The notes under the pieces were generated by a model. It had not been told where the DNA came from, made no database searches, and saw only the letters and a list, made by a program, of their open reading frames with translations. Below, piece after piece: positions 24,874 through 38,918 of a stretch of DNA of 64,000 nucleotides. Positions within the stretch are counted from its first letter, which is position 1. Each line of letters opens with the position of its first letter. The translations under genes and the position numbers were made by a program. The stretch is taken from contig OU015568.1 in NCBI GenBank assembly GCA_907165135.1, positions 6,634,001 through 6,698,000 of the forward strand. The letters are read 5' to 3'. Origin of the DNA: Oikopleura dioica. Lineage: Eukaryota > Animalia > Chordata.

Positions 24874-27800
24874 TTAGACCGGGCAAGTTAGGGAGTAAAA
24901 GTTTCCGCGAATATTCAGTTGATCGTTGGCTTCTGGTTCCCAAGAAACTGGCTCGTCGTTCATGTAGAAGTCTGTCAGACAGCCGGAGAGACGCTTGAAG
25001 CTGACGCTGCCGTCGAGAACGGTCATGTGATCGCGAAGAGTTTGTTTCTTTGTGGAATCGTTGACCTTGAGAATCACCTGCTCGTCACTGCCTTCGTTCT
25101 TGAATTCGACTGAAAAGAGCGGTTATTCGCTGAAAGATGGAAGAGAAAACTCACCTGAAATTTCAATAGGTTGAGATCTGCAGTCTTTGTTTCTTACAGA
25201 AACGCGAGCTACACCCTTAGCGATGTAAATGTAAGCGACGACTTCTTCTTTTTCGACTTTGATTTCCATTCGCTCATCTTAATTGATTTCAGCTAGATTT
25301 GGGCAATTTAAATTTTGTTTTACCTTTTTCAGTGTTGAAAATTTCTACAAGCTCGAATTTCTCGTCTGTGGGAGTGAGCGTGACTTCGAATTTTTCAAGA
25401 CGTTCTTTGAGAGAAAAATCAATGGCGGTTCCTCGAGGAGAGAAGAAACCAACATCGCCGGGTCGAGAAAGAATGGCGGGAGAGTTCTGGATTCGCTTTG
25501 GATTCATTTCTCGATCGTTCATCTTTACATCGAAGACTGCTCCGCTGAAGCCCTCGACATTGTCCATGGTGGAAGGGCATTTGAGAGGAGTTTCACCGAT
25601 GAAGAGAGTGCTCAATGATTTCTTGGCAATTCGCAATCGCTTGTTTTCGGAATATCTGTCGAAACTCAAGATGAACTTGGTTTTTCCGCGGCTCATTTCT
25701 CTCGCTTCGATTCTGATCTGCACGCGCTTGTTGACTGGCAAGTTCTTCTTGAGATCCACTGTGTCTATCTCTTTCTGCCCGTCGGAGATGTACAAGCTTG
25801 GCTGCTGATTGACAACGACCAGGGAAACGTAAGCACTGCAGTCGTCATTTGTCAATTTGGCGATAGTTCCGTCTTTCTCTTCAATTTCAACGTCGAGATC
25901 GAGTTCGAACCGGTTGATCTTTTCGCCGTTGCGGAGGTTGAATTTCAAGAAGCTATCTGGTTTCAGCATGAATTTCTCAACTTCTGGGATTCGTTGATCA
26001 AAATGCTCGCACTTCTCGTGGTGGACCTTTCTCGAGCGCTGGTGTTCCCGAGAGCTGGCAGAATCGACCGACATCTCGACGACATGAGTGGACATCAAGC
26101 TTTGAGGAACATTCGCGTGGCATTCGTTGAAGCGCAATTGCCCCTGGCAGATGTTTCTGGTCCTGTCGTGGCAGAGGAAGCCGTCAAGAGCAGTTGCCAG
26201 GAAGACGTTCTTCTCATCCCGGAGATTTTCGATGAAAGGAACTGTCATGCAGCCGAAGAACGGTTGCTGGACGCGCTGGTTTTTCACATTTCGACCGCCG
26301 AGAGTCAGCTCGATGCTTTCATTCTCCACTTCTGCCAGTTCAAGTGCTTCGAATTTTTCTTCGTGGCCGTTGATGGAAACGAACAATCCCTCGCCATTTT
26401 TGCGTTCGATGGAGACAGCGATGTTCTCTTCCGCGACGACACGAACTGGGACGGAGAAGGTTTCTTCTTCTTTGTTAGTTTTGATGAAGAAGTTGGTTTG
26501 ATCGCCGTTTGGTGTGATGCCGAACTCAACGAATCGCTGGCCGTTTGGATTGTGAGCGCGGAGAAGGACGGAGTTTCGGAGATTGTAACCAGCTAAACAA
26601 GTGATTGATAAAGGTTTTGAGGATTTTTCTCTGAATTACCTTGGATAGTGAAACTGAAGACGGCTCTGAAATTGCTCAAAGTTCCCTTCAAGTTCTTTCG
26701 AATAATCGCTTCGTTTCCGTTGAATGAGACTTTCTGGAGATTAGGGGTTTTGCACCCAGGCAAGATTCCTGATTTCATGACAGAAGAACCAGGAGCGAGA
26801 TCCAAAGGCTTGTGATTGATAGCTGTTTTGCCGAAGCAACCGGTGTATCGCTTGTTGTACATTGGAACGTATTCTGACAGATGGCTCAAATCGCCGTAGA
26901 TTGGTTGGAAACCACCGAGATGAATTTGGTTGGAGATTCGGAACTCGCAGCCGTGGCAAGTCTTGCTCTTCTTTTTGATGTAGAAATCGTTTTCAACAGA
27001 GACGACTTTGTTTACGTTCCATTCTTTTACCGACAATCCAGCGACGCCACCAACCATGCCGATTCGAAGAGTGAGCTCGTTTGACTCTCGTTGGATTCTT
27101 GTCACGTGCTCTGGCTTCATTCCGAATGCGGTAGGGATGTAAGGATCGTTCGTCTTTGGTCGCTCAAGTCGGACTGCATTTGGTCCTGCTTTGTAACCAA
27201 GATTGTATGAGAAGACAGGCTCGCCATTTTGCAGTTCAAGGGCGAGGAAGTAATCTTTTTGAAGTGGATCGCCGATGAAGAAGATCAGCGCATCAGCTTG
27301 GGTAGTCGCTCGAAGCTTCATCTGGAAAACGATAGTTCCGGAGTCCTGGTTGACCATGTATTTTGAGTGCGATTCATCATCGAGATGAGCCCATGAATTC
27401 TCACCGGAGAACTGGTAGCAACCGGCTGTTTCCTTGATCGGCGAAGTTTCTAGAATCTGTTCCCAGTTGAGATGCTGCTGTTCTCGGCTGAAATCCTCAG
27501 CTGCCTCGTCGAAATTCCAAACAAAGATTTCGCGACCGTTGAGGACGACTTCTGCGAGTTCCATTTTCGTCGAAGTACTCTTGACACCATCAAGTGATTC
27601 GGGGAGAGCACCAAGAATCAAGGTAGTTTTATTGGAAACAAAGGTATTTTCTTGCGTTGGGAAGGTTGCGAAAACTTCAGAAGATCTCGATGAATCATCA
27701 AGCTTGGAGACATGGAGGACTAACTGATCGACGGATCGTCGAACTCGGATTTTCTGCCAGGTGCTGTCGGGTCGGAAAACTTCAGTGTCTGATTTCAAAA

Positions 27801-30800
27801 TGACTGAATCGGCATCAGCGGTGTTCTTGAAGACGACTCGGGGCTTTCCTTCCAAAATTTCAAGAGTCAAGAAGCTGGAATCGGACTCGAACAGAGTGAA
27901 AACATGAGCAGATGGCTTACGAGGCCGAACAAGGATTTCAAGATTGACTTCGTCGACAAGCTCAACGGGGAATTTGACCTCAGAGATGTCGTAGATTGTA
28001 TATTCATCGTCCTTGATCTGGAGAGGAATCTTGTTGGAGATGTAGTTTACGAGAGTCTTTGACATTTCAATTTGCTCCATGATCTCGTCAATGCTCTTTT
28101 GCATTTCTGCAAACATATCATCAGTATCCTTGGCGATCTCGTTGATTTCATTATTAATCTCAGCGAAGTTGTCTTCGTTGACACCGGTGGCGATTTCGAC
28201 AACCTTGTCGCCGCACGATTTCATGATGTTTTCGGTTTCTTCAAGCATCTGCGTTGCTTCTTCAGTGTATTTCGAAATGTGATCGTACGAAGTTTTGACT
28301 TTTTCAAGATTATCGTTGATTTCTTTGCCGGTCTTGAAGATGTCATCGACTGGAACTGTTTTATTTATCTCGTTGAAGATGTCCAAGTTGTCAATTAGAG
28401 TTTGATAGGCTTCCATATCAACAGGTTCGTTGTAGATTTCATCTAGTTTCGCAAACTGAGCATCAAGAGGGTCTTTTTCTTTGATGAGGAGATTCAGATG
28501 GTTCTGAGTTTCATCAAGTTTCTTGTCAGTTGCGTAGAGAGATTCAAGCACTCCGCTGCAGGTAGATTCAGCTTCTGATTTTTCAGTAATTGATGGAAGT
28601 CGCCCATCAATACCATCGAGCAATTCCTGGGCAGACTCAATTTCGGCGAAAGAATTTTTGATAACTTGGTCAATATTTTGAGCACGCAACACTTCAATTT
28701 GCTTGTCAAGTCCAGGAGAGACTTTAGTGAAGAAAATCTCATAATCGCGGTGAATTTGCTCAATCTTGGCAGCGTGTTTTCCAGCGTCGGCAACCCAGTC
28801 TCGCTCTTCTTCTCCAATCTGCTCGATGACCGCTTTCGATTTTTCCATTCGCTCTTCGATTTGTTCGAGTCCTGAAATGATGGTCGCATCATTGTTGAGT
28901 CGGTAGATGGAATTTTCGAATTGAGCCAATGGATCTTCACCAGATAGGGTAGAGTAATCATGGCGAGTTCCATTGTTCATGATGTTTGCGTCATTGAGTA
29001 TTTTGGACGTTTCATAGTAGCTGGCTTTGTAGTCGTTGGCGTCCGAGTGAATCTGCATGATCGTCTTGTTGTTGATTTCAGTCAAATCCATGACATAAGA
29101 AAGATCTTCAGTGATTTGATCGAGAGTTTCTTTGAACTGATCGAGTTTGGCTTTCTTTTCCTCGATTTCTTCAATCAGAAGACCTCCTCGGGAAGAAAGC
29201 TTAGTGACATTGTATCGTCGATTAACATCTTCCAATGTCTCTGTCGCTAGAATTTGCTCCTCAACTGTGGCTTCGTTGTTTTCGAGACGCAAAACTTCGT
29301 GATAATGGATGTTTGTGATGTTGAAAATAATCTCTTGGGCAGTTGGAACCCAGACATTGTCGAATTCATCGAAGTCAATTTGCTTCTTTCTCGCGATTTC
29401 CATAGCTCGGAAGCTCAATTCATCCAAATCTGTCGAAAGAACGGTCGACTCCTCGAATCTATGCTTGGACTCATCAGTCGATAGTTTTGTTCTGACTTCG
29501 TATTCATGAACGTCGTGGCAAGTTCCGATCATTGAGTTGTACATCTTTTCGAATTCGCGAACCTGATCGCCCGAGGAGTAGCCCATGAGATTTCGTTCCA
29601 ACGAGTTCACATGATTTTTGAGTCCCTTGAGCTCCTTGTCCATGATATTTAGTTTCCGATAAGCAAGGCCACCAGCTTTTGTGACTTCCAGATCAGTCAG
29701 GCGAATCGACACTTCAGTAGTGTACATATCGAGAGATTTTTCATCGTATCCGAGGAATTCATCCCAGTCTCCTTCTGTTCGAGGACCGAGAAGCCAGTCA
29801 ATGCAAGATGAGCACGGTTCGCATTTGGTGTTTAGTCCTGATAGACGAGTAACTGCTCGTGGGTTTTCGCATTGATCGCATTGCGCGCCAATTACTCCTG
29901 GAGGGCACTCGCATCGGCCGGTCTGAGAGTCACATGGAAGACCAGGTGGACAATTGCACTGCTTGCAGCCGGAAGAAGTCAGATCATAGTGACCTTCTTG
30001 GCATTTGTCGCAGTTGAGTCCTTCAACACCAGGCTTGCAAGTGCACTGTCCAGTGAGTTTGTCGCAAACATCAGATGTAGAACCGTTCTTGTCACAAGCG
30101 CAAGTTTTGCATCCAGTCATGTGACAGCTATCAAAGTCCCAGAAGCCATCAGCACATTGATCACATGTCTCGCCAACGACGTTTGGTTTGCACTGACAGT
30201 CGCCGAAGATGTTGTCACATCCTTGAGAGCCGCAGATGTTGCAGTTGCACTCCTCGCAAGACTTTTCAATCGCGTTTCCAAAATAGAAAGGAGCGCATTT
30301 TTCACAGTGTTTTCCTGCAGTGTTGTTGATGCAAGCGAGACAAGTTCCATCTTGATCATCGCACTGAACGTTGCCGGTGGAAAGGTCAGAGTTGCCATTG
30401 CAATCGCACTTTTTGCACTCTTGGTTGATCATATTTGGGCGACCGAACCAACCAGCATCGCATTTTTCACAGGCAGCGCCGGTGTATCCTGGCTTGCAGT
30501 TGCAAACAACGTCGAAATCATCCTTTTTATCAGGGTTGAAGATGTTTGTAAAGTCCGTGAACTCAGAGTAGTCGGCAATCTTTTCATCCTTGACTTGGTG
30601 GAAGCAAGAGATGGAGTGCGAGTTGTGCTCGCTTGGGCAAGGACAGGGTTTGCAATCGGCAGAAGTTCCACCTTTGGCGTATCCAATGAATCCCTCGGCG
30701 CAGAACTCGCAGTTTGTGCCCATCGTATTGTCAAGACAGGTTGAGAGCTCAATTGTACTCTCGGCCAGTTTCATTGCCGAATCTTGAATGTAGATTTCGC

Positions 30801-33800
30801 TGCCGTCTTGTTCAACACCTTCAATGTATTGGCTAGAAACATCGCTGGTAACATTGTTCAAGAGGATGAAAGTTTGCTCGCCAAGGAGAGACGAGGTATC
30901 CCAGTATCGAGGGTAGCCGTCTTCGTCGCATTCATCGCAGTGGTTGTTGCATTTGCATTTCTGGCAGCGCTGGTATCGAGAACCTTCAGTATTTGACTTA
31001 TCCCAGTAGTAGCCTTTATCACACTCCTCGCAACTCGGTCCCACGTGACCTTCTGGGCAAGTACAGACTTCGACGCGGGAGCGGTGAGCGTATCGAGAAG
31101 CTTCAGAAGAATCAGAATATGGCATCTCAAGTTGGTCGGTAAAGTCGGTATCTTCGAGGATCAGATTGGAAATTTGAATTTCAGAGACGGCAACGGGATA
31201 GGAAGCTTTCATTTTGATGCCGGTCAAGTCACGAAGAACCTTGAGCAGTTCGTTTCGAGAGATAGGTTGGTGAGTGAGGGCCGAGAAGAAACCGTTTTCC
31301 ATGAGTGGAACTCGGACGGTCATTGAGTTTGAGTCGGATCGATGTTCGTCGGATTTCCAGTAGATGCTGAGTCCATTACCGTCAAGATAGAGATCTGGAT
31401 CAGTGTTGAGCGACGAGAAAGCGCTGTTTGCAGCCTTGTCGTGCTCTTCTTCGTCCCAGGTGATTGTGTACTCAAGGAATCCACCGTAAGCGCCAAGTCT
31501 GTTACCGCCGTATTTCTTCACAGGAGCGACCCAGTAAAGAGGCTTTCGAGCTTGAGAGTCGGATCGAAGAGCTTGGCCACCTGCTTTATTGACTTCCAAG
31601 GTGATGGAGTTTTCAAAGGCAAAGAGGGCTTTTTCGTAGTTAGGCGAGATCATTCCTTGAACACGCCAGTCTTCAGCTGTAGACATGTCAGAAACGGAGA
31701 GAACAGCAAAGTCGGATGGTCGACAATCAGCATGACCGGTCTCGAGTTGGATTAAACCGGAGCAGTAGCAGGAAATGCAGCCAGCTGGATTCTGAGAATC
31801 GAGGAAGAAGGAACCGGCTTTGCAGCGAGAGCAGCTGGTGCCTTCGACGTTTTCTTTGCACTGGCAAGCTCCTGTTTTGACATCGCACTGGTTATTGTCC
31901 CCGATGGTACCGCGCTCATCGCACTCGCATTTTTTACAGTTGGGGAATCCGTAGTAACCAGGGAGACATCGATCACAGCTTTTACCAGTGATGAAGGGTA
32001 GGCAAGCGCATTGACCGTTGTGGTCGTCGCAGCTTTCAGAAGCGCCGATGGTTCCTTCAGCGTTGCAGTTGCAAAGCTTGCATCCTGTGATATGATGGTA
32101 TCCGTAAGCATCATCCTGGCAGCTAAGGCAATCTTCAGATGTATTTGCTGGGCAGAGACATTCGCCAGTGCTCTCGTCGCAGACCGTGTTTCCGACACAA
32201 TTGCATTTTCTGCAATTTGGCCAGTTGTAGTAACCAACCTCGCATCTTGAGCAATCGCGTCCGATGACATTTGGCTTGCATTCGCATTGACCGCCGTAGG
32301 CTTCGCACTTTTCGCTGTATCCAACTGTTCCGGCAGTGGCACACTGACACTGCTTTGGATTCGAGTTCGACATGACGAGGGTCAAAGCGTTGTCTTTGCA
32401 CATTTTTGGAATATCGTCGTCACGTGGGTCGATCAAGAAGCCGCAGTTTTTAATAAACCAGTCGGCGTGGTTGAGTTCGGCGAGATCAAGTTGTTCAATT
32501 GACCATTTTGTCTCCGGGATGACGATGAAGTTCTTGATTCTGAGAGGTGAGTTTTCTTCGAAATCGATTGAAAGAGTGATTGCTTGTTCTGTGAAAGGGA
32601 AGACCTTATCGCCATTTTGGAGATAAATAATCGCTCGGCAGCCAGATGTCAATTGGCAGTATTCAATTCGGACGGTGCCATGGAAAGACTCAACAGCAGA
32701 TTCGATGAAAATGGATGTGTTGTAGCTCAGACTCTCTTCGTTGTAGTAGTGGATGACAACGAGACTTGGCTCCTCTGCGTGAAGTTCAGTGGAGACATGA
32801 ACCTTGGTTCCATTCTCTGGAGGCACGAACCAAAGACTGTCTGACAGACGAATTTCAGTAGCAGCAGCTGGAGTGGATGGATAGACAGATTCATCAGGGT
32901 TGATAAACTTAGGGCCGTGGCTAGAAATTCCTAGTTTCTTTGGCTGAACAACTTCGATGGACCAATCTTCAAACGGAATGACATGGATTCTCCTGATAAA
33001 GAGCATTTGATCGTCTCGGATTCTTCCTTCGTGGCTGATGGAAAGATAGATCGGACCGGCATCCATATCAATCACTGAAACTTCTCGGTTGAGAGTCACG
33101 CCAACTTGTCGGCAAGAGAAGAGATAGTTGCAAGCATAGGCATTGTAATATCCGGGCTCGACGCGCTCGATTCCGTGTTTTCTGTAGGTGACGTCGATTC
33201 GCACTTGTTGGATTCGCTCAACTCTGTTGACGTAGTCCATCACGAGGACGTACTTGCCTTTTGTTTGAATGTCGATCTGAGCGTAGAGGTTTTCCGCTTT
33301 GGTTCCGTCCAACATGAGCATCTTTTCAAAAGGCTGTGTTCGTCCAGCAACAGTATTGTAGACCATGGGAGGGATGATTTCAAAGTCGCCGGCGAGTGGA
33401 AGTCGGAAAGTTGAGTATTCGCGGACAACAGTTCCGATCGGAAGGGGGAAGTGATCATACATCATGCATTTTGACCCCTTGGATTCAGAGAATTTGCATG
33501 GCTCGTCAACTTTTTGCTTGAGAATTCGCGGCTCATAGTAATCTGCTGGAAGAAGAGCGATGTAGTCAACCAAGACACCTTCTTTTTTGAACTCGGCTCC
33601 TTCAGTGTCGATTTCAAGTCGGAACTTGTACTCGCCTTCAGAAAGAACAGCATCAGTGTTGAAGGAAACGGTAGACGGCTCTGCTGATTGAGGAAGCTTG
33701 ATCTCGACGATTTGTGGAGCTTTGCCTAAAAAGAACGGTAAGTCAATTGTTTATTGAGAAAGGAAATGGGTTTGCTTGTTCAAAAAACTTCGATTTCCCG

Positions 33801-36800
33801 GTGAAAAACAAAAACGAACTTGAACATGTTTTTTCCTCTGACTCGATGTTTCGTCTTTTTCTACTGTTCTCAGAAGAAGAGTCGTCAAAAGTTATCGCAT
33901 CCCTAGAAGAACTAGGAATGAAATCAACCATTATTGGTTTCTCGTCAATAATTTCTTCATTGGCAAAGGAAGCGCATCCAGAGTAGCAATCCTGCTCCTC
34001 AGCTCGCAAAAGATGCTTTCGACCATTTATAATTGTCGTTGGACACCCTGATCACGGTTTTTGATTCTGATAAAAATACAATAGACTATGAAATGGTTAA
34101 AACCGAAACAGAGTAGCTAGAAGATAAACAAGTAAATTTTCTAGTTCGTTTTCCTCCGTCAATAGAACATTCGCACGCTGTCCATTCTGACCAACCCTGA
34201 ATCTTTTGTTCTTGAGTGGTTTCGATTTTTTGTGTAGTCGTAGATGTCGAAGAAGATTCTGTTGTTCTTCTTGTCGTGGTAGTTGTTGGAGGTAAATTTG
34301 AGCCTGGAGAAGGCCAAATAAGATCAGCACTGAAGGATGAGTCAACTGATTCTGGAAGAGGCCACACAGGGTCTATTGAAGACTCTGTTGTTGTCGTTGT
34401 TGTTGTGGTAGTTGTTGGAGGTAAATCAGAGCCCGGACGAGGCCAGATAGGATCAATACTGAGAGACGGGTCAACGGATTCCGGAAGAGGCCAAACAGGG
34501 TCTATCGAATTATCAGACGGTACTGTTGTTGTGGCTTTTGTTGAGCTTGCTGCTTCGCTAGTTGCTCGTGGAGGCGGGAAAACAGTGGCGATATTTTCTC
34601 CGGTGATAGGTTGGGGCCAAATTGTTGAAGATTCTGTCGCTTCTGGTTGTTCTGTTGTTGTCGTTGTGGATTGTTTTGTAGAAGTCGTTGTTGTAGTCGT
34701 AGTGGTAGATGTTGATGTAGTCGTAGATGTTGATTTAGTTGTAGATGTGGTCGAAGTTGTCGAGGTTGAAGTTGTGGTTTCCACCTTCTGATGAGCTGTA
34801 GAAATCATCCTCTCAGAAGTCATTCCTTCTTCTGGCATTGAAGTGGAGGACTGATAACCTGGTGGTTTCGGCCAAATGGATTGATGAGCTTGAGTTACGA
34901 TCGGCTCCCAAGTTTGAGTTGTGATCTCTGCAGCAATAGTTTTTGCCGTCAAAGTTGTAGATCTTGTAGTCGATATTCTTGTTGTGATAGTGATTTGTTG
35001 CTTTTGTGTGGTAGTTGTTGAAATTACGGGTTTCGATGTCAGATGAGGATCATAATCAGAAAACTGCTCAAAATATGGATGGCTGTCTGATCTAGGCGGA
35101 ACATTTGAAGAAAAACTACTTTCCTCAATGATTGGATCATTTTTATGAAAAAATTCTCGAGTCACTCTTTCCTCCTCCTCTTCTTCTTCAATACAGTCAG
35201 TCCCGATCTTTGTCATGATCAGCCTCCCTGTTAGCGTAGAATTTTCAGTATTTCGATAATGAAGCATAATTTTGAACAAGCTCTCCCCTTTCAATTCGAC
35301 CTTTCCACCAAAGCCCACATAATTCTAAAAAACTTACATTTAACGACGAGATCATCAGATTCAACGCACGCCAAATCGGAAATGTTCAATCGCGCGGTGA
35401 TGAGTTTCGTGGTCGGATTCACGAACCGGATGAGAACTTTGTACAGTGGAATCGCGTTGGGAAGAGGTTTCTCTATTTCCCCGTGGGTTACCACTGCTGG
35501 CTGGGTTAAGGAAATTTGTTAGATTTTCTGGTTAGTGAGTTTTTAAGGTACCTGAATGTCTGAGAGCTCAGCATAGCCTCGGAGAGAAAAGTCTGGGAAG
35601 AGAGCTTTATCGACTCCGTATCGAACATGTTCTCCAGAATCGAGATATCCATCCTCAGCCTCGAATTTGTACTTGTACAATGTTGGGAAATACCAGCCAG
35701 ATTCGACATCGTCACATCTTCGACCTTTCACGTGATCTTTGCAAGTACATTGGCCATCGTTGGCTTCGCATTGAGCGAGAGCTCCTCCTTGAGTTCCGCC
35801 AACATCGCAAGAGCAAGGAACGCAGCCGAAGTAGTCCTTTTCTTCCAATCCATAGAATCCATCGAGACATTTGGAACATTTTCTGGTGCAGACATGATTT
35901 TTGCAGTTGCACTGTCCGTCTGAGGAAGCGCAGTCTTTTATTTCGTTGAGCAAACCAGCCCGGAAACAACCGCATTCTTCGCAGCCGTCTGGATTGCTTC
36001 CTTGCAGATTCCAGTGTTTGTTCAAGCACTGCTCGCAGTACATGCCCCCAGTAGCTCTCTTGCAAGTGCAGCTTCCAGTTTCGAAGAAAGAGCAATAGGC
36101 CTTGTCAGGGTTGGCGATTCCATCAGGATGGCAAGGGCAGCTTTTGCACTCCGGAAAGTTGAAGAAGCCCAGCGCGCAAGAGTTGCAAGTTCGCCCAGTT
36201 GTTTGAGGAAGGCCGAGAGAAGCTGTTTCTTGCGATGTTCGGCACTGGCATTGTCCGGTAACCTTGTCACAATAGGCCGATTCTGCGCCATTGAGATCGC
36301 ACTCGCAGGCTTTACAAAAGCCACTCTCGTCCATGTAGTAGTTGTCAGCGCACTGGTCGCACCTGACACCCGAGTATTCTTCTTTGCAAACACATTGGCC
36401 GGTGTAAATATCGCAGGGCTCGTTCTTAACGCTACCGATCTCTGAGCAGGTGCACTCGCCACAGTCCGGGAAGGTGTGGTACCCGGCGCGGCATTTTTCG
36501 CACTTGGCTCCGTCAAATCGCTCGTCGCAGAAACAGGAGAGGGTGGAAAGAGTGGAATTGCAAAACTCTTCAGTTGTTCCGTACTTTGAGCAGAGGCATC
36601 GATCGCAAGCGGGGTAGTTGTGATATTGTGTAGCACATTGCTCACAGCTATCACCATCAAAAGCTGGTTTGCAGACGCAGGCGCCAGTTTCCTTGTCGCA
36701 CGGGGCTGTTTTCACTGCTCCAGGCTGCTGTGCGCACTCGCAGGGAACGCACTCGGGGAAGTTGAAGAAGCCGTCGGCGCATTGGTCGCACATTGGACCA

Positions 36801-38918
36801 GTGTAGTTTTCCTTGCACTCGCAGATTCCAGTTTCTTCATCTGGTCGGCATTGTCCGGAAGCTTCTTCAGTCGATTTGGTTCCCGCGTAAAAGCATGGGC
36901 AAGGATTGCACTCAGGAAAGTCCATGAATCCTTCGGCACAAGAGTTGCACAAATGGCCAGCGTATTTCTCCTTGCACTTGCAGGCGCCCGTGTCGTGATC
37001 GCAAGTAGTGTCGGTGTAGTTGCTTGGGCAGTCGCACTCGAGACAGGCGTTCTCGTCTATGATTTCAGCAGCTGGATTTCTGTAAAATCCATTTTCGCAC
37101 CGTTCGCAGTTGATGCCAGTAGTGTGGTGTTTGCAGTCAACGCAGACTCCGCCACCTTCATAGATGCCATCGATGTTCATGGAGCGGCCTTCGCGCTCGA
37201 CGTTTTCGTCATAGTAGCACGCATCAGCGTGTTGATGACAGTTGCACGCGACACACTCGTTTTCGTGGTCGCGCTCGGCGTGTTTCCATTTCCGCTGGTT
37301 AAAGAGCGGCATGCATTCCTAGTTTCATGGGCTCCAAAAATGTACAATTTCAAACATATTGTACGTAATAAGAGGAAGTTCAGAAGTTCCACTACCGAAT
37401 TCCTAATTAACTATTTCGTCATGACAAGTTCAGCTATTTTTGGATCCCTTTCCTGGCAGGAAATTCCAGCAGTGTTGTGCTTGCAGTTGCATCGAAGCTT
37501 GTAGTCGCCAGAGTTCTTGTCCGCTGAGCACTCGTCCGCGTGACCGTTGCAGTCGCATCTGCCGCCGATGGAGATATCCTTGATCGAGTAAAAATATCGT
37601 CGCGTAACTGACTCGTCGTTTTCCATGATTCCCATCAAATGGCCAAGAAGAGTTTTCGCCAGCTCAAATCGAAGTCGAATCTTGCGAGCTTTGGTCCACG
37701 CTTGAAGAGTAGGACTGGACCAGAAGTTGACAGCACCAGGTCGACCCTTGATCAGCGAGACGATGATTTCTCCATTCTCGAGCGGCGGAATTTCGGAAAA
37801 GTCAGAAGTGCATCGAACCTCGTCATCGATAGAAACCCAATCGTTGGCGCCAGTGTGTTGAATTCCAAAGTTCGGGGGACAGTCGCTGCCGTGGTTGGCG
37901 AAGTATTGCCAGGGATGGAAGTTTTCTCCGTCCAGCGATCGTTCCAAAACCCATCGGCCAGCGCGAGGAGAGTTGGCAAACTTGATCACAATGTAGGCAA
38001 CATGAAAGACCTAAAAACAGTTGAACTTTTTGTATTCCAAAAGAGAGCGAAAAAGACATTTCGCACCCGCAAAAGATGAATTACGCTTCCCTTGATTGAT
38101 CTCCCACGAGCTAATCATCCCCCTTTTACGACGAGTTTACCCCATAGTCACGTCACCAATAAACCCATAATTAAAAGGACCCATAAATAGGTTGAAAGGG
38201 CGCTTAGAGTGCTGAATTTCCATTCTTCCCTTTTCCGCAACAATAACAATCGGCCCCTTATTCGAGGCTTTGTTCGTCAATAGAGCGGGTTTACTCGAGT
38301 CCCATTGAAAATTTGCACAGTTGTTATTGTTTTTCATCCCTTTTTAGGTTTTCCTGGGCAAATTTGTCTTACAAAGGATTGCTCAAAAAGCTGGTTTCTG
38401 AGACAAAACTGTCAATTTACTTTTGAAAGTTCGAAAATTCCACTCAAAAAGTTGACTCAAATTTATTACCTGTCCAAGATCGATGGTGACATTGACCTTG
38501 TTGAAATCCTTGTCCAGGGTATTCGAGCTGAGGGGAGGACTTTGCCACCAGTTCTCAGTTCCATCGATGGCATTCTCGATCGGATGAGCTCGGGCAGGAT
38601 TGGTATCGTCGCAGAGGTCACAGAATTGACCACCGGTGCCAGTTCCCAAGTAGCGGATGAGGGCCTCGTCGGGATCTTGAAGATAGTCGGAGCCGGCGGA
38701 GAGTTTACAAAACACTTCCGGTTTGAGAGTGCCGCATGTCGCAGTTGCTTCGATCTTCTTCCCCGTCGCCAAGTTGAAGTACTTTGGGGCGAGGACGCCG
38801 TAGTCTTCAACTTTCGTCTCTTTTGCCTGAAGAAATTTTTAATCGAGGAAAATCTTATCAAAAATCTTACCTGACTAGCAAAAGGGCCAAAAGCTGCTAG
38901 AAGCAATAATAAACCCAT
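24874..38918 (-). CDS. LAMA5: Laminin alpha chain, alpha3/5 class (LN-LE-L4a-LE-L4b-LE-coiled coil-LG1-5)
   Basis: Signal exon MGLLLLLAAFGPFASQ; LN domain YFNLATGKKIEATATCG...NAIDGTENWWQSPPLS...IKFANSPR; many LE repeats; heptad region; LG domains ending FYSLTCPV*. Confidence 0.93.
33826..35324 (-). CDS. Laminin alternative exon block B (homologous L4a segment + mucin + TSP1-like repeat + RKRR)
   Basis: Phase-0 acceptor ttttag|AAT. Reads NYVGFGGKVELKGESLFKIMLHYRNTENSTLTGRLIMTKIGTDC, then S/T/P-rich tract and WSEWTACEC...RTR. After a probable intron at 34048-34117 it continues to RKRRNIESEEKT with phase-1 donor T|gttcaa. Confidence 0.7.
35338..35500 (-). CDS. Laminin alternative exon A (short L4a segment)
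   Basis: Phase-0 acceptor cccag|CCA and phase-1 donor AAAT|gtaag. Encodes PAVVTHGEIEKPLPNAIPLYKVLIRFVNPTTKLITARLNISDLACVESDDLVVK(C). Confidence 0.8.

Follow-up and report, generated by a model that had tools for sequence, protein, structure and literature searches.

A candidate alternative exon module with mucin-like and TSP1-like segments in the short arm of a laminin alpha chain from Oikopleura dioica

The DNA analyzed here, referred to as the window, is a stretch of 64,000 nucleotides (nt) from the chordate Oikopleura dioica (NCBI GenBank assembly GCA_907165135.1, contig OU015568.1, positions 6,634,001 to 6,698,000 of the forward strand), and our interest lies in a long alternative coding module, B, of a laminin alpha gene on its minus strand; positions below are counted from the first letter of the window. 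Judged by the domains of its predicted protein, this gene encodes a laminin alpha chain of the alpha3/5 type, in the order LN, LE repeats, an unnamed globular domain, LE repeats, Laminin_B, LE repeats, coiled coil and LG domains. In our Pfam scans, each of the two LN exons yielded a Laminin_N match (E 2e-34 and 1.4e-17), and positions 35552-37312 encode ten LE repeats. EGF_laminin (E 3.6e-72 and 6.6e-68) and Laminin_B, the L4 domain (E 1.7e-22), follow the expected order, Laminin_G_1 and Laminin_G_2 matches (E 5e-15 to 1.6e-16) lie after the coiled coil, and Laminin_II stayed sub-threshold at 17.5 bits. We take the layout LN-LE-globular-LE-Laminin_B to be that of alpha3B/alpha5-type chains. 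The gene is set in a very compact genome, and its introns are tiny, about 50 nt.

The first and the second block of LE repeats are separated by the globular domain of about 480 amino acids (aa), most of which is encoded by a 7-kb downstream exon, termed the common exon; the same exon encodes the following LE repeats, one Laminin_B domain, the coiled coil and the LG domains. For the globular domain (window 32500-33725), neither Pfam nor a sequence search of the PDB provided a name, the only leads being weak CBM6/CBM35-like Atlas features, and in word-based protein searches neither the initial 400 aa of the common exon nor a 240-aa fragment recovered any relatives. It is within this domain that the gene offers two alternatives. 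The last base of the upstream exon is 35552 (phase 0, donor 35551), and this exon could be continued either by a short exon A or by module B, which consists of the exons B1 and B2. The two "isoforms" A and B described in the first-pass annotation of this DNA are gene models, read from the genomic sequence. The elements on which our argument relies are the following.

About 38918 to 26593, minus strand: laminin alpha gene.
35338 to 35500, minus strand: exon A, the short alternative, 54 codons plus 1 nt, phase 0 to phase 1, donor GTAAGT at 35337.
35325 to 35337, minus strand: spacer between the exon A donor and the B1 acceptor, 13 nt, gtaagttttttag.
34118 to 35324, minus strand: exon B1 as modeled in the first-pass annotation, 1.2 kb, phase-0 start; its open reading frame (ORF) continues to a stop at 34086-34088.
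35193 to 35324, minus strand: exon-A-like N-terminus of B1, aa 1-44, ending in the first flanking Cys (codon 35195-35193).
34200 to 35024, minus strand: mucin-like tract, B1 aa 101-375, 275 aa with 81 Thr, 42 Ser and 28 Pro (55% S+T+P).
34128 to 34193, minus strand: TSP1-like N-terminal half, W378 to C399, WSEWTACECSIDGGKRTRKFTC, with the pattern WSEWTACEC..GG.RTR.FTC.
34048 to 34117, minus strand: putative B1-B2 intron of the same model, GC...AG, 70 nt, with its AG acceptor at 34049-34048.
33826 to 34047, minus strand: exon B2, 222 nt, phase 1 to phase 1.
33851 to 33862, minus strand: RKRR, a match to the R-X-K/R-R proprotein-convertase consensus, 8 residues before the closing Cys.
33726 to 33825, minus strand: intron between B2 and the common exon, 100 nt, donor GTTCAAG, acceptor TTTTAG.
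26596 to 33725, minus strand: common downstream exon, whose first two bases, gc, complete the closing Cys.

Two related sequences allowed us to follow these elements beyond the window. L003, a Tara Oceans contig of 1632 nt, has the layout of the window: the last part of the upstream exon is followed by an intron of 51 nt, exon A, a spacer of 15 nt (gtaagtttcgtttag) and the full B1 ORF, beyond whose stop the contig continues into the first 34 codons of B2. A third lineage, L004, was found by scanning JGI metagenomes for a back-translated pattern of the start of the common exon; it holds the last 86 codons of B1, the whole of B2 and, after the intron that follows, the common exon. Exon A is identical to that of L003 at 51 of its 54 residues, the common exon is 87% identical to that of L004 over 196 aa, and the B1 ortholog of L003 (P0003) measures 369 aa. 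Synonymous divergence (dS) between the lineages, estimated like the ratio of nonsynonymous to synonymous substitution rates (dN/dS) by the Nei-Gojobori procedure, is about 1-2, which fits the deep cryptic species that have been described for O. dioica (PMC11067885).

Exon A encodes 54 aa ending in DLACVESDDLVVK, followed by a single t; its C-terminal coding part, LYKVLIRFVNPTTKLITARLNISDLACVESDDLVVK and then (C), thus closes with ACVESDDLVVK plus t, and joining this t to the gc at 33725 yields the second Cys of a C-x9-C pair. In the same manner, the final t of B2 and the gc of the common exon rebuild this second flanking Cys, and the Cys pair that flanks the insertion is present in both alternatives and in all lineages. 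All Cys pairs of the globular domain are local in the sequence (C-x9-C at the exon A junction, C-x10-C, C-x6-C, C-x5-C and C-x15-C), and from the local pairing of all others it may fairly be inferred that the flanking pair forms a local disulfide as well. Exons A and B1 both start in phase 0, and A and B2 both end in phase 1 with a t, so that either alternative would fit between the same neighbors. The 13-nt spacer is too short to serve as an intron, and exons A and B1 should consequently be mutually exclusive. The two exons also resemble each other: a Smith-Waterman comparison of the B1 N-terminus with exon A scored 47, a value reached by none of 5000 shuffles (18.4 +/- 3.3; z about 8.7), and on this score exons A and B1 are homologous. 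BLASTP aligned no part of exon A with the B1 N-terminus. As exon A and B1 share no similarity at the DNA level, the duplication that produced them should be old.

The ORF of B1, with 410 codons, is far beyond chance, the probability of meeting no stop over this length being about (61/64) to the power of 410, or 3e-9. After the exon-A-like start and the first flanking Cys, it runs through TDC-IEEEEEEE with eight acidic residues, a unique segment and a Thr-rich tract before reaching QGWSEWTACECSIDGGKRTRKFTCLSS. The first-pass annotation had put the length of the S/T/P-rich tract at about 330 aa; the tract is there, but it measures 275 aa. Its Pro/Thr/Ser (PTS) composition is mucin-like, the L003 ortholog is likewise Thr-rich, and both short periodic repeats of Thr codons (3-36 nt) and a tandem duplication of a 129-nt unit (34252-34509) are embedded in it. 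The 129-nt unit carries two WPxP sites and is duplicated only in the lineage of the window, being single in L003. Altogether, the tract contains seven Wxx sites (six WPx and one WEP), mostly in the form [ILV]WPxP; this motif occurs six times between B1 residues 139 and 339 and recurs in L003 at matching and additional sites (SIWPKPP, TIWPKPS, TLWPHPS, ISWPTY). To our knowledge, no function has been assigned to it. B1 possesses neither a signal peptide nor a conserved in-frame ATG, and it must consequently be spliced to the upstream exon via the phase-0 donor at 35551. The alternative idea of a nested gene with its own start was rejected for the same two reasons.

Database searches place module B among lineage-specific sequences. 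A Pfam scan of B1, B2 and exon A reported nothing at E values up to 1, tblastn with B1 and B2 uncovered no paralogue in the window, and a word-based protein search with the B1 N-terminus returned nothing. When B1 was searched with HMMER against 1.84 billion proteins, only two reached E <0.001: the orthologous ORF P0001 (cluster mate P0003) from marine metagenome assemblies (E 3e-40), and P0002, a multi-TSP1 protein (E 1.7e-11). Within this collection of proteins, the B module is lineage-restricted by the similarity that we could detect, and the other relatives of B1 are only generic TSP1 repeats.

The first-pass annotation placed a TSP1-like unit in isoform B, and this claim can be upheld in part. 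The last 41 aa of B1 align to profile positions 2-25 of 49 of the Pfam TSP_1 family, yet with 14.6 bits they stay under its cutoff of 21.6, and to positions 3-24 of 52 of TSP1_spondin with 15.4 bits. P0002 has 16 TSP_1 repeats (E 3.5e-107), and each of these genuine repeats aligns with the segment WSEWTAC..GG..R..T. WSEW itself is identical in the three lineages, and the R-x-R that follows reads RTR in the window and in L003 and RSR in L004. On this sequence basis, a TSP1 N-terminal half is credible, and a whole TSP1 unit is putative. Every lineage has three Cys at the end of B1 and three at the start of B2, and uniting all six in one chain would require the putative B1-B2 splice. B2 encodes CPTTIINGRKHLLRAEEQDCYSGC, an acidic and Ser-rich tail, SRKRR and NIESEEKT plus t; it begins with (R)CPTTIING...QDCYSGC and finishes with NSRKRRNIESEEKT plus t. 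The convertase motif RKRR lies where it had been reported, and SRKRR is identical in L004, where it is embedded in variable flanks and an acidic tail.

The divergence between the lineages reveals how strongly the individual parts have been constrained, as is evident from the following dN/dS values.

Upstream exon: 0.009.
Exon A: 0.06.
Common exon: 0.06.
B1 overall: 0.18.
B1, exon-A-like N-terminus: 0.17.
B1, TSP half: 0.06.
B2, window versus L004: 0.35.
B2, L003 versus L004: 0.10.

The overall figure for B1 is a rough one, given the uncertain alignment of the mucin-like tract and a dS near saturation; those for its N-terminus, the TSP half and B2 are sounder. Wherever B1 and B2 differ in length between the lineages, they do so by multiples of three; the B2 indels are of 3 and 12 nt. 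Kept between the window and L003 are NYV.FGG.VELKGESLFK, LHYRNTE (with synonymous changes only), the Cys and the acidic run, and further on FF..DP.IEESS, NPHLTS, SIWPKPP, additional WPxP sites, ATVFPPP and QGWSEWTACECS.DGG.RTRKFTCL; in B2, CP.T.ING..HLLRAE.QDCYS(G)C, VD.IP, ITF.D.SS, SRKRR and EKT plus t have been preserved, and L004 retains the splice donor of B2 as well. The Thr-rich stretches of the window and L003 cannot be aligned; unalignable sequence and varying repeat numbers are usual for mucin-like tracts. In these lineages, B1 and B2 are, to judge from this pattern of substitution, translated and under purifying selection, with a weaker constraint than that on exon A. The first-pass proposal that B is a coding insert between the two Cys of the nine-residue loop is hence borne out by selection in three lineages and by the same Cys in each of them.

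Two further contigs, L001 and L002, come from independent metagenome assemblies and are 97.7% identical to L003 over B1; their first 89 nt, in which an in-frame TAA occurs, bear no relation to L003. The 5' end of L002 is identical to that of L001; L002 stops at 1161, and L001 diverges in its last 10 nt (1189-1198). The cause could be structural variation, paralogy or a chimeric assembly. We considered and rejected the notion that this TAA marks a broken B N-terminus, as L003 is intact and the two contigs merely diverge upstream of position 90.

The junction between B1 and B2 is, as far as can be judged from the aligned lineages, the weak point of the B model, and its splice is probably non-canonical (a caret marks splice sites in what follows). 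On the acceptor side, AG^G(G/C)TGTCC is kept in all three lineages, and stops occur one or two codons upstream of it in the B2 frame; B2 should consequently start in phase 1 at 34047. The alternative acceptor ttttatcag^AAT, which had been offered in the first-pass annotation as a route to a truncated protein, did not hold up since it is conserved neither in L003 nor in L004. On the donor side, the proposed GC is indeed located at 34117-34116 in phase 1, and splicing at a^GC would keep the frame to give FTCLSS-R-CP. In L003 and L004, the sole phase-1 donor starting with G after the conserved block is t^GC within the codon of the third Cys, which would produce FT-C-CP; the equivalent of this site in the window is t^GT at 34129 (phase 1), and its use would create a Trp. 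The Cys count of the module is even, namely eight, with a^GC in the window and with t^GC in the sister lineages, and odd with t^GT in the window. Non-canonical introns make up 11-12% of the total in O. dioica (PMC8008620).

The intron between B2 and the common exon is also unusual, as it is 83% identical to that of L004, compared with 40-47% at synonymous sites. Its positions 33758-33785 are complementary to positions 35270-35297 of B1 (inverted repeat I1), with a perfect core of 12 bp (GCUUGUUCAAAA and UUUUGAACAAGC). Among 183 regional windows, the 5' window of B1 was the best duplex partner of this intron (-31.2 versus -13.7 +/- 4.1 kcal/mol; z about -4), and across lineages the 5' region of B1 in L003 (391-430) was the best partner of the L004 intron (579-680), with -31.0 kcal/mol. 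This conserved long-range RNA complementarity brackets the 1.5-kb B module and may loop it out, thereby favoring exon A.

A second complementary pair (33811-33827 and 34136-34152; 17 nt, 88%) connects the region of the B2 donor with the TSP-half coding sequence at the end of B1. Its B1 arm is not conserved in L004, and it may be due to chance.

These data lend themselves to an explanation in which exon A and the pair B1-B2 are alternative modules of the same laminin chain, and overall we consider this explanation to be rather probable. When the upstream donor at 35551 is joined to the B1 acceptor at 35325, exon A would be skipped, and the nine-residue C-x9-C loop, of the size of a beta-hairpin, would give way to about 430 residues bounded by the same two Cys. 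B1 would keep the first Cys and add about 360 residues, comprising the acidic run, the mucin-like tract and the first TSP1-like half; splicing over a short intron to B2, with which B1 would share one mRNA, would then contribute three more Cys, the acidic tail, RKRR and the t that rebuilds the second Cys. The Thr/Ser/Pro tract would carry O-glycans and be extended, WSEW would be open to C-mannosylation, and a furin-like convertase could cut after RKRR, leaving the parts tethered by the flanking disulfide, with possible consequences for the spacing of the laminin network. In the alternative state, the RNA duplex would loop out the B module and bring the donor of exon A beside the common acceptor. 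The complete picture of a switchable laminin, whose O-glycosylated and TSP1-bearing brush of about 430 residues is cut by furin and yet remains tethered, and whose use is set by the 13-nt steric lock together with the RNA duplex, is a tentative one, and we would sooner expect it to fail in one of its parts than to hold throughout. All of the sequence strings quoted in the first-pass annotation were found at their places on the minus strand; its observation is confirmed in this way, and its interpretation is partly supported.

Several of our findings weigh against the joining of A or B1-B2 as alternative modules. On its own, neither half of the presumed TSP1 unit is called TSP_1 by Pfam, the B1 half being sub-threshold and B2 alone giving no TSP match at all. 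The proposed GC donor (34117; TA^GCTACT) is weak, and it is absent from L003 and L004, which have g^at there. The canonical GT donors at 34108 and 34102, which belong to a stretch of 10 nt, GTTTCGGTTT, shared without change by the window and L003, are of phase 0 and would lead to a TAA six codons into B2, common to the three lineages. A tail, Y-S-V-S/L-V, is conserved after the TSP half in all three lineages and is followed by a stop, as would suit a product that terminates in B1; between L003 and L004, two of the three substitutions in this tail are synonymous. The variant represented by L001 and L002, with its unrelated 5' end and in-frame TAA, has to be added here. Finally, four RNA runs with the same species label (three bulk and one single-cell) cover the gene only by one exon A read (run X4, about 35330-35503) and by low-complexity noise over the poly-Thr codons (34386-34417 and 34680-34770). 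As the constitutive exons are uncovered too, these runs say nothing about B.

Termination within B1, either at the stop at 34086 or via the GT donors at 34108 and 34102, is the rival explanation that draws most on these points. It would convert B into a truncating exon and the product into a secreted short-arm fragment with LN, the first LE block (LEa) and a mucin tail, similar to LaNt alpha31. The stop soon after the conserved tail in three lineages speaks for it, as does the fact that the phase-0 GT donors combined with the conserved acceptor would give a similarly short tail with a TAA at the same place in each lineage, while a conserved canonical phase-1 donor is missing. Truncation would, however, leave unexplained why B2 is conserved as coding sequence in the CP frame, with in-frame indels and dN/dS values of 0.1-0.35; it would also leave the three Cys of the TSP half without partners, though B2 starts with exactly three, and would cut the globular domain after about 100 of its approximately 480 residues. 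Nor does a conserved AATAAA follow the stop. On balance, we regard truncation as unlikely, if still worth serious attention; a truncated product might also be made in addition to the full-length one. A different arrangement, in which B2 is an independent phase 1-1 cassette used after exon A, with B1 separate and the six-Cys TSP1 unit an accident, strikes us as improbable. The symmetric phases of the 222-nt B2 would permit this, and in L003 and L004 the terminal t of exon A, which ends in phase 1, together with gc gives a Cys and an even Cys count; in the window, the same junction (t+gg) yields a Trp and an odd count. B1 would still require a phase-1 exit to be productive, and it would be a coincidence that a TSP N-terminal half ends B1 where three Cys start B2. 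We give hardly any credence to the proposal that exon B plays no part in laminin, whether as a duplicate that is decaying or not expressed or as a nested gene. The unique parts of B are devoid of RNA reads, but the same holds for constitutive exons; B evolves much faster than exon A, and the 5' end of L001/L002 is disrupted, yet frames of 369-410 codons have stayed open at a dS of about 2, with dN/dS 0.18 and in-frame indels only, and the acceptor, the phase and the flanking Cys are conserved. A nested gene is further disfavored by the missing start codon and signal peptide noted above.

Elsewhere in the laminin alpha gene, a non-canonical GA...AG intron of 134 nt (37319-37452) is predicted within the first LE repeat. 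Its basis is protein continuity only: NTAGISCQ^ECMPLFNQRKW requires the removal of this segment, and no GT is usable.

Every basement membrane owes the nodes of its polymer to laminin short arms, whose domain plan belongs to the best conserved in animals. If the alternative-module explanation is true, a selected and lineage-specific exon in this position would represent a natural experiment in the tuning of matrix spacing, hydration or ligand binding, carried out in an animal that depends on secreted matrices such as those of the notochord sheath and the house epithelium. For the study of mutually exclusive splicing, it would provide a compact and testable example that combines a steric lock with a conserved RNA duplex, in a genome where many introns are non-canonical. 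Should B1 instead truncate the chain, an independent origin of a LaNt-like laminin fragment would have been found.

In its domain order, and in a first globular domain that interrupts an LE repeat and has no Pfam name, the chain studied here resembles the alpha3B/alpha5-type laminins, i.e., vertebrate LAMA5, Drosophila LanA and C. elegans EPI-1. It differs from them by the mucin tract, the TSP1-type unit and the convertase site, which are confined here to a lineage-restricted alternative exon. We know of no described laminin with any of these three elements in the first globular domain of its short arm, and our literature searches found no description of such a laminin form. With TSP1 repeats (PF00090, PF19028), the module shares the WSxW, the following Cys pair, the GG and the R-x-R layer at profile positions 2-25, and the best match of B1 outside its orthologs is P0002 with its 16 bona fide TSP1 repeats. 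In contrast to such repeats, its first two Cys are spaced C-x-C rather than C-x-x-x-C, so that the POFUT2 motif is absent; its second half, which scores nothing alone, lies in another exon; its score is under the Pfam threshold; and its third and fourth Cys would be separated by four residues or none, depending on the donor used.

Tandem homologous exons of equal phase with a gap of 13-15 nt between donor and acceptor are also a property of mutually exclusive exons, such as exons 2 and 3 of alpha-tropomyosin and those governed by docking and selector sequences in Dscam and 14-3-3zeta. The putative alternatives in our case are of very unequal length (54 versus about 475 codons, the latter in two pieces). 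A conserved intronic element complementary to the start of an alternative exon is likewise known from pairing of the Dscam/14-3-3zeta type; here, it would loop out the whole B module and not choose among many variants. R-X-K/R-R in a flexible, acidic and Cys-bounded segment recalls furin-cleaved proteins whose parts stay tethered, such as the heavy and light chains of integrin alpha3 and alpha6 and the LG3-LG4 linker of laminin alpha chains, whereas the putative site described here belongs to the short arm, where it precedes the closing Cys by 8 residues. If B1 ended at its own stop, its product would be comparable to LaNt alpha31, the short LAMA3-derived protein in which LN and LE repeats acquire a novel tail through alternative processing; the tail would then be mucin-like and about 400 aa long, and the conserved B2 argues for the full-length form.

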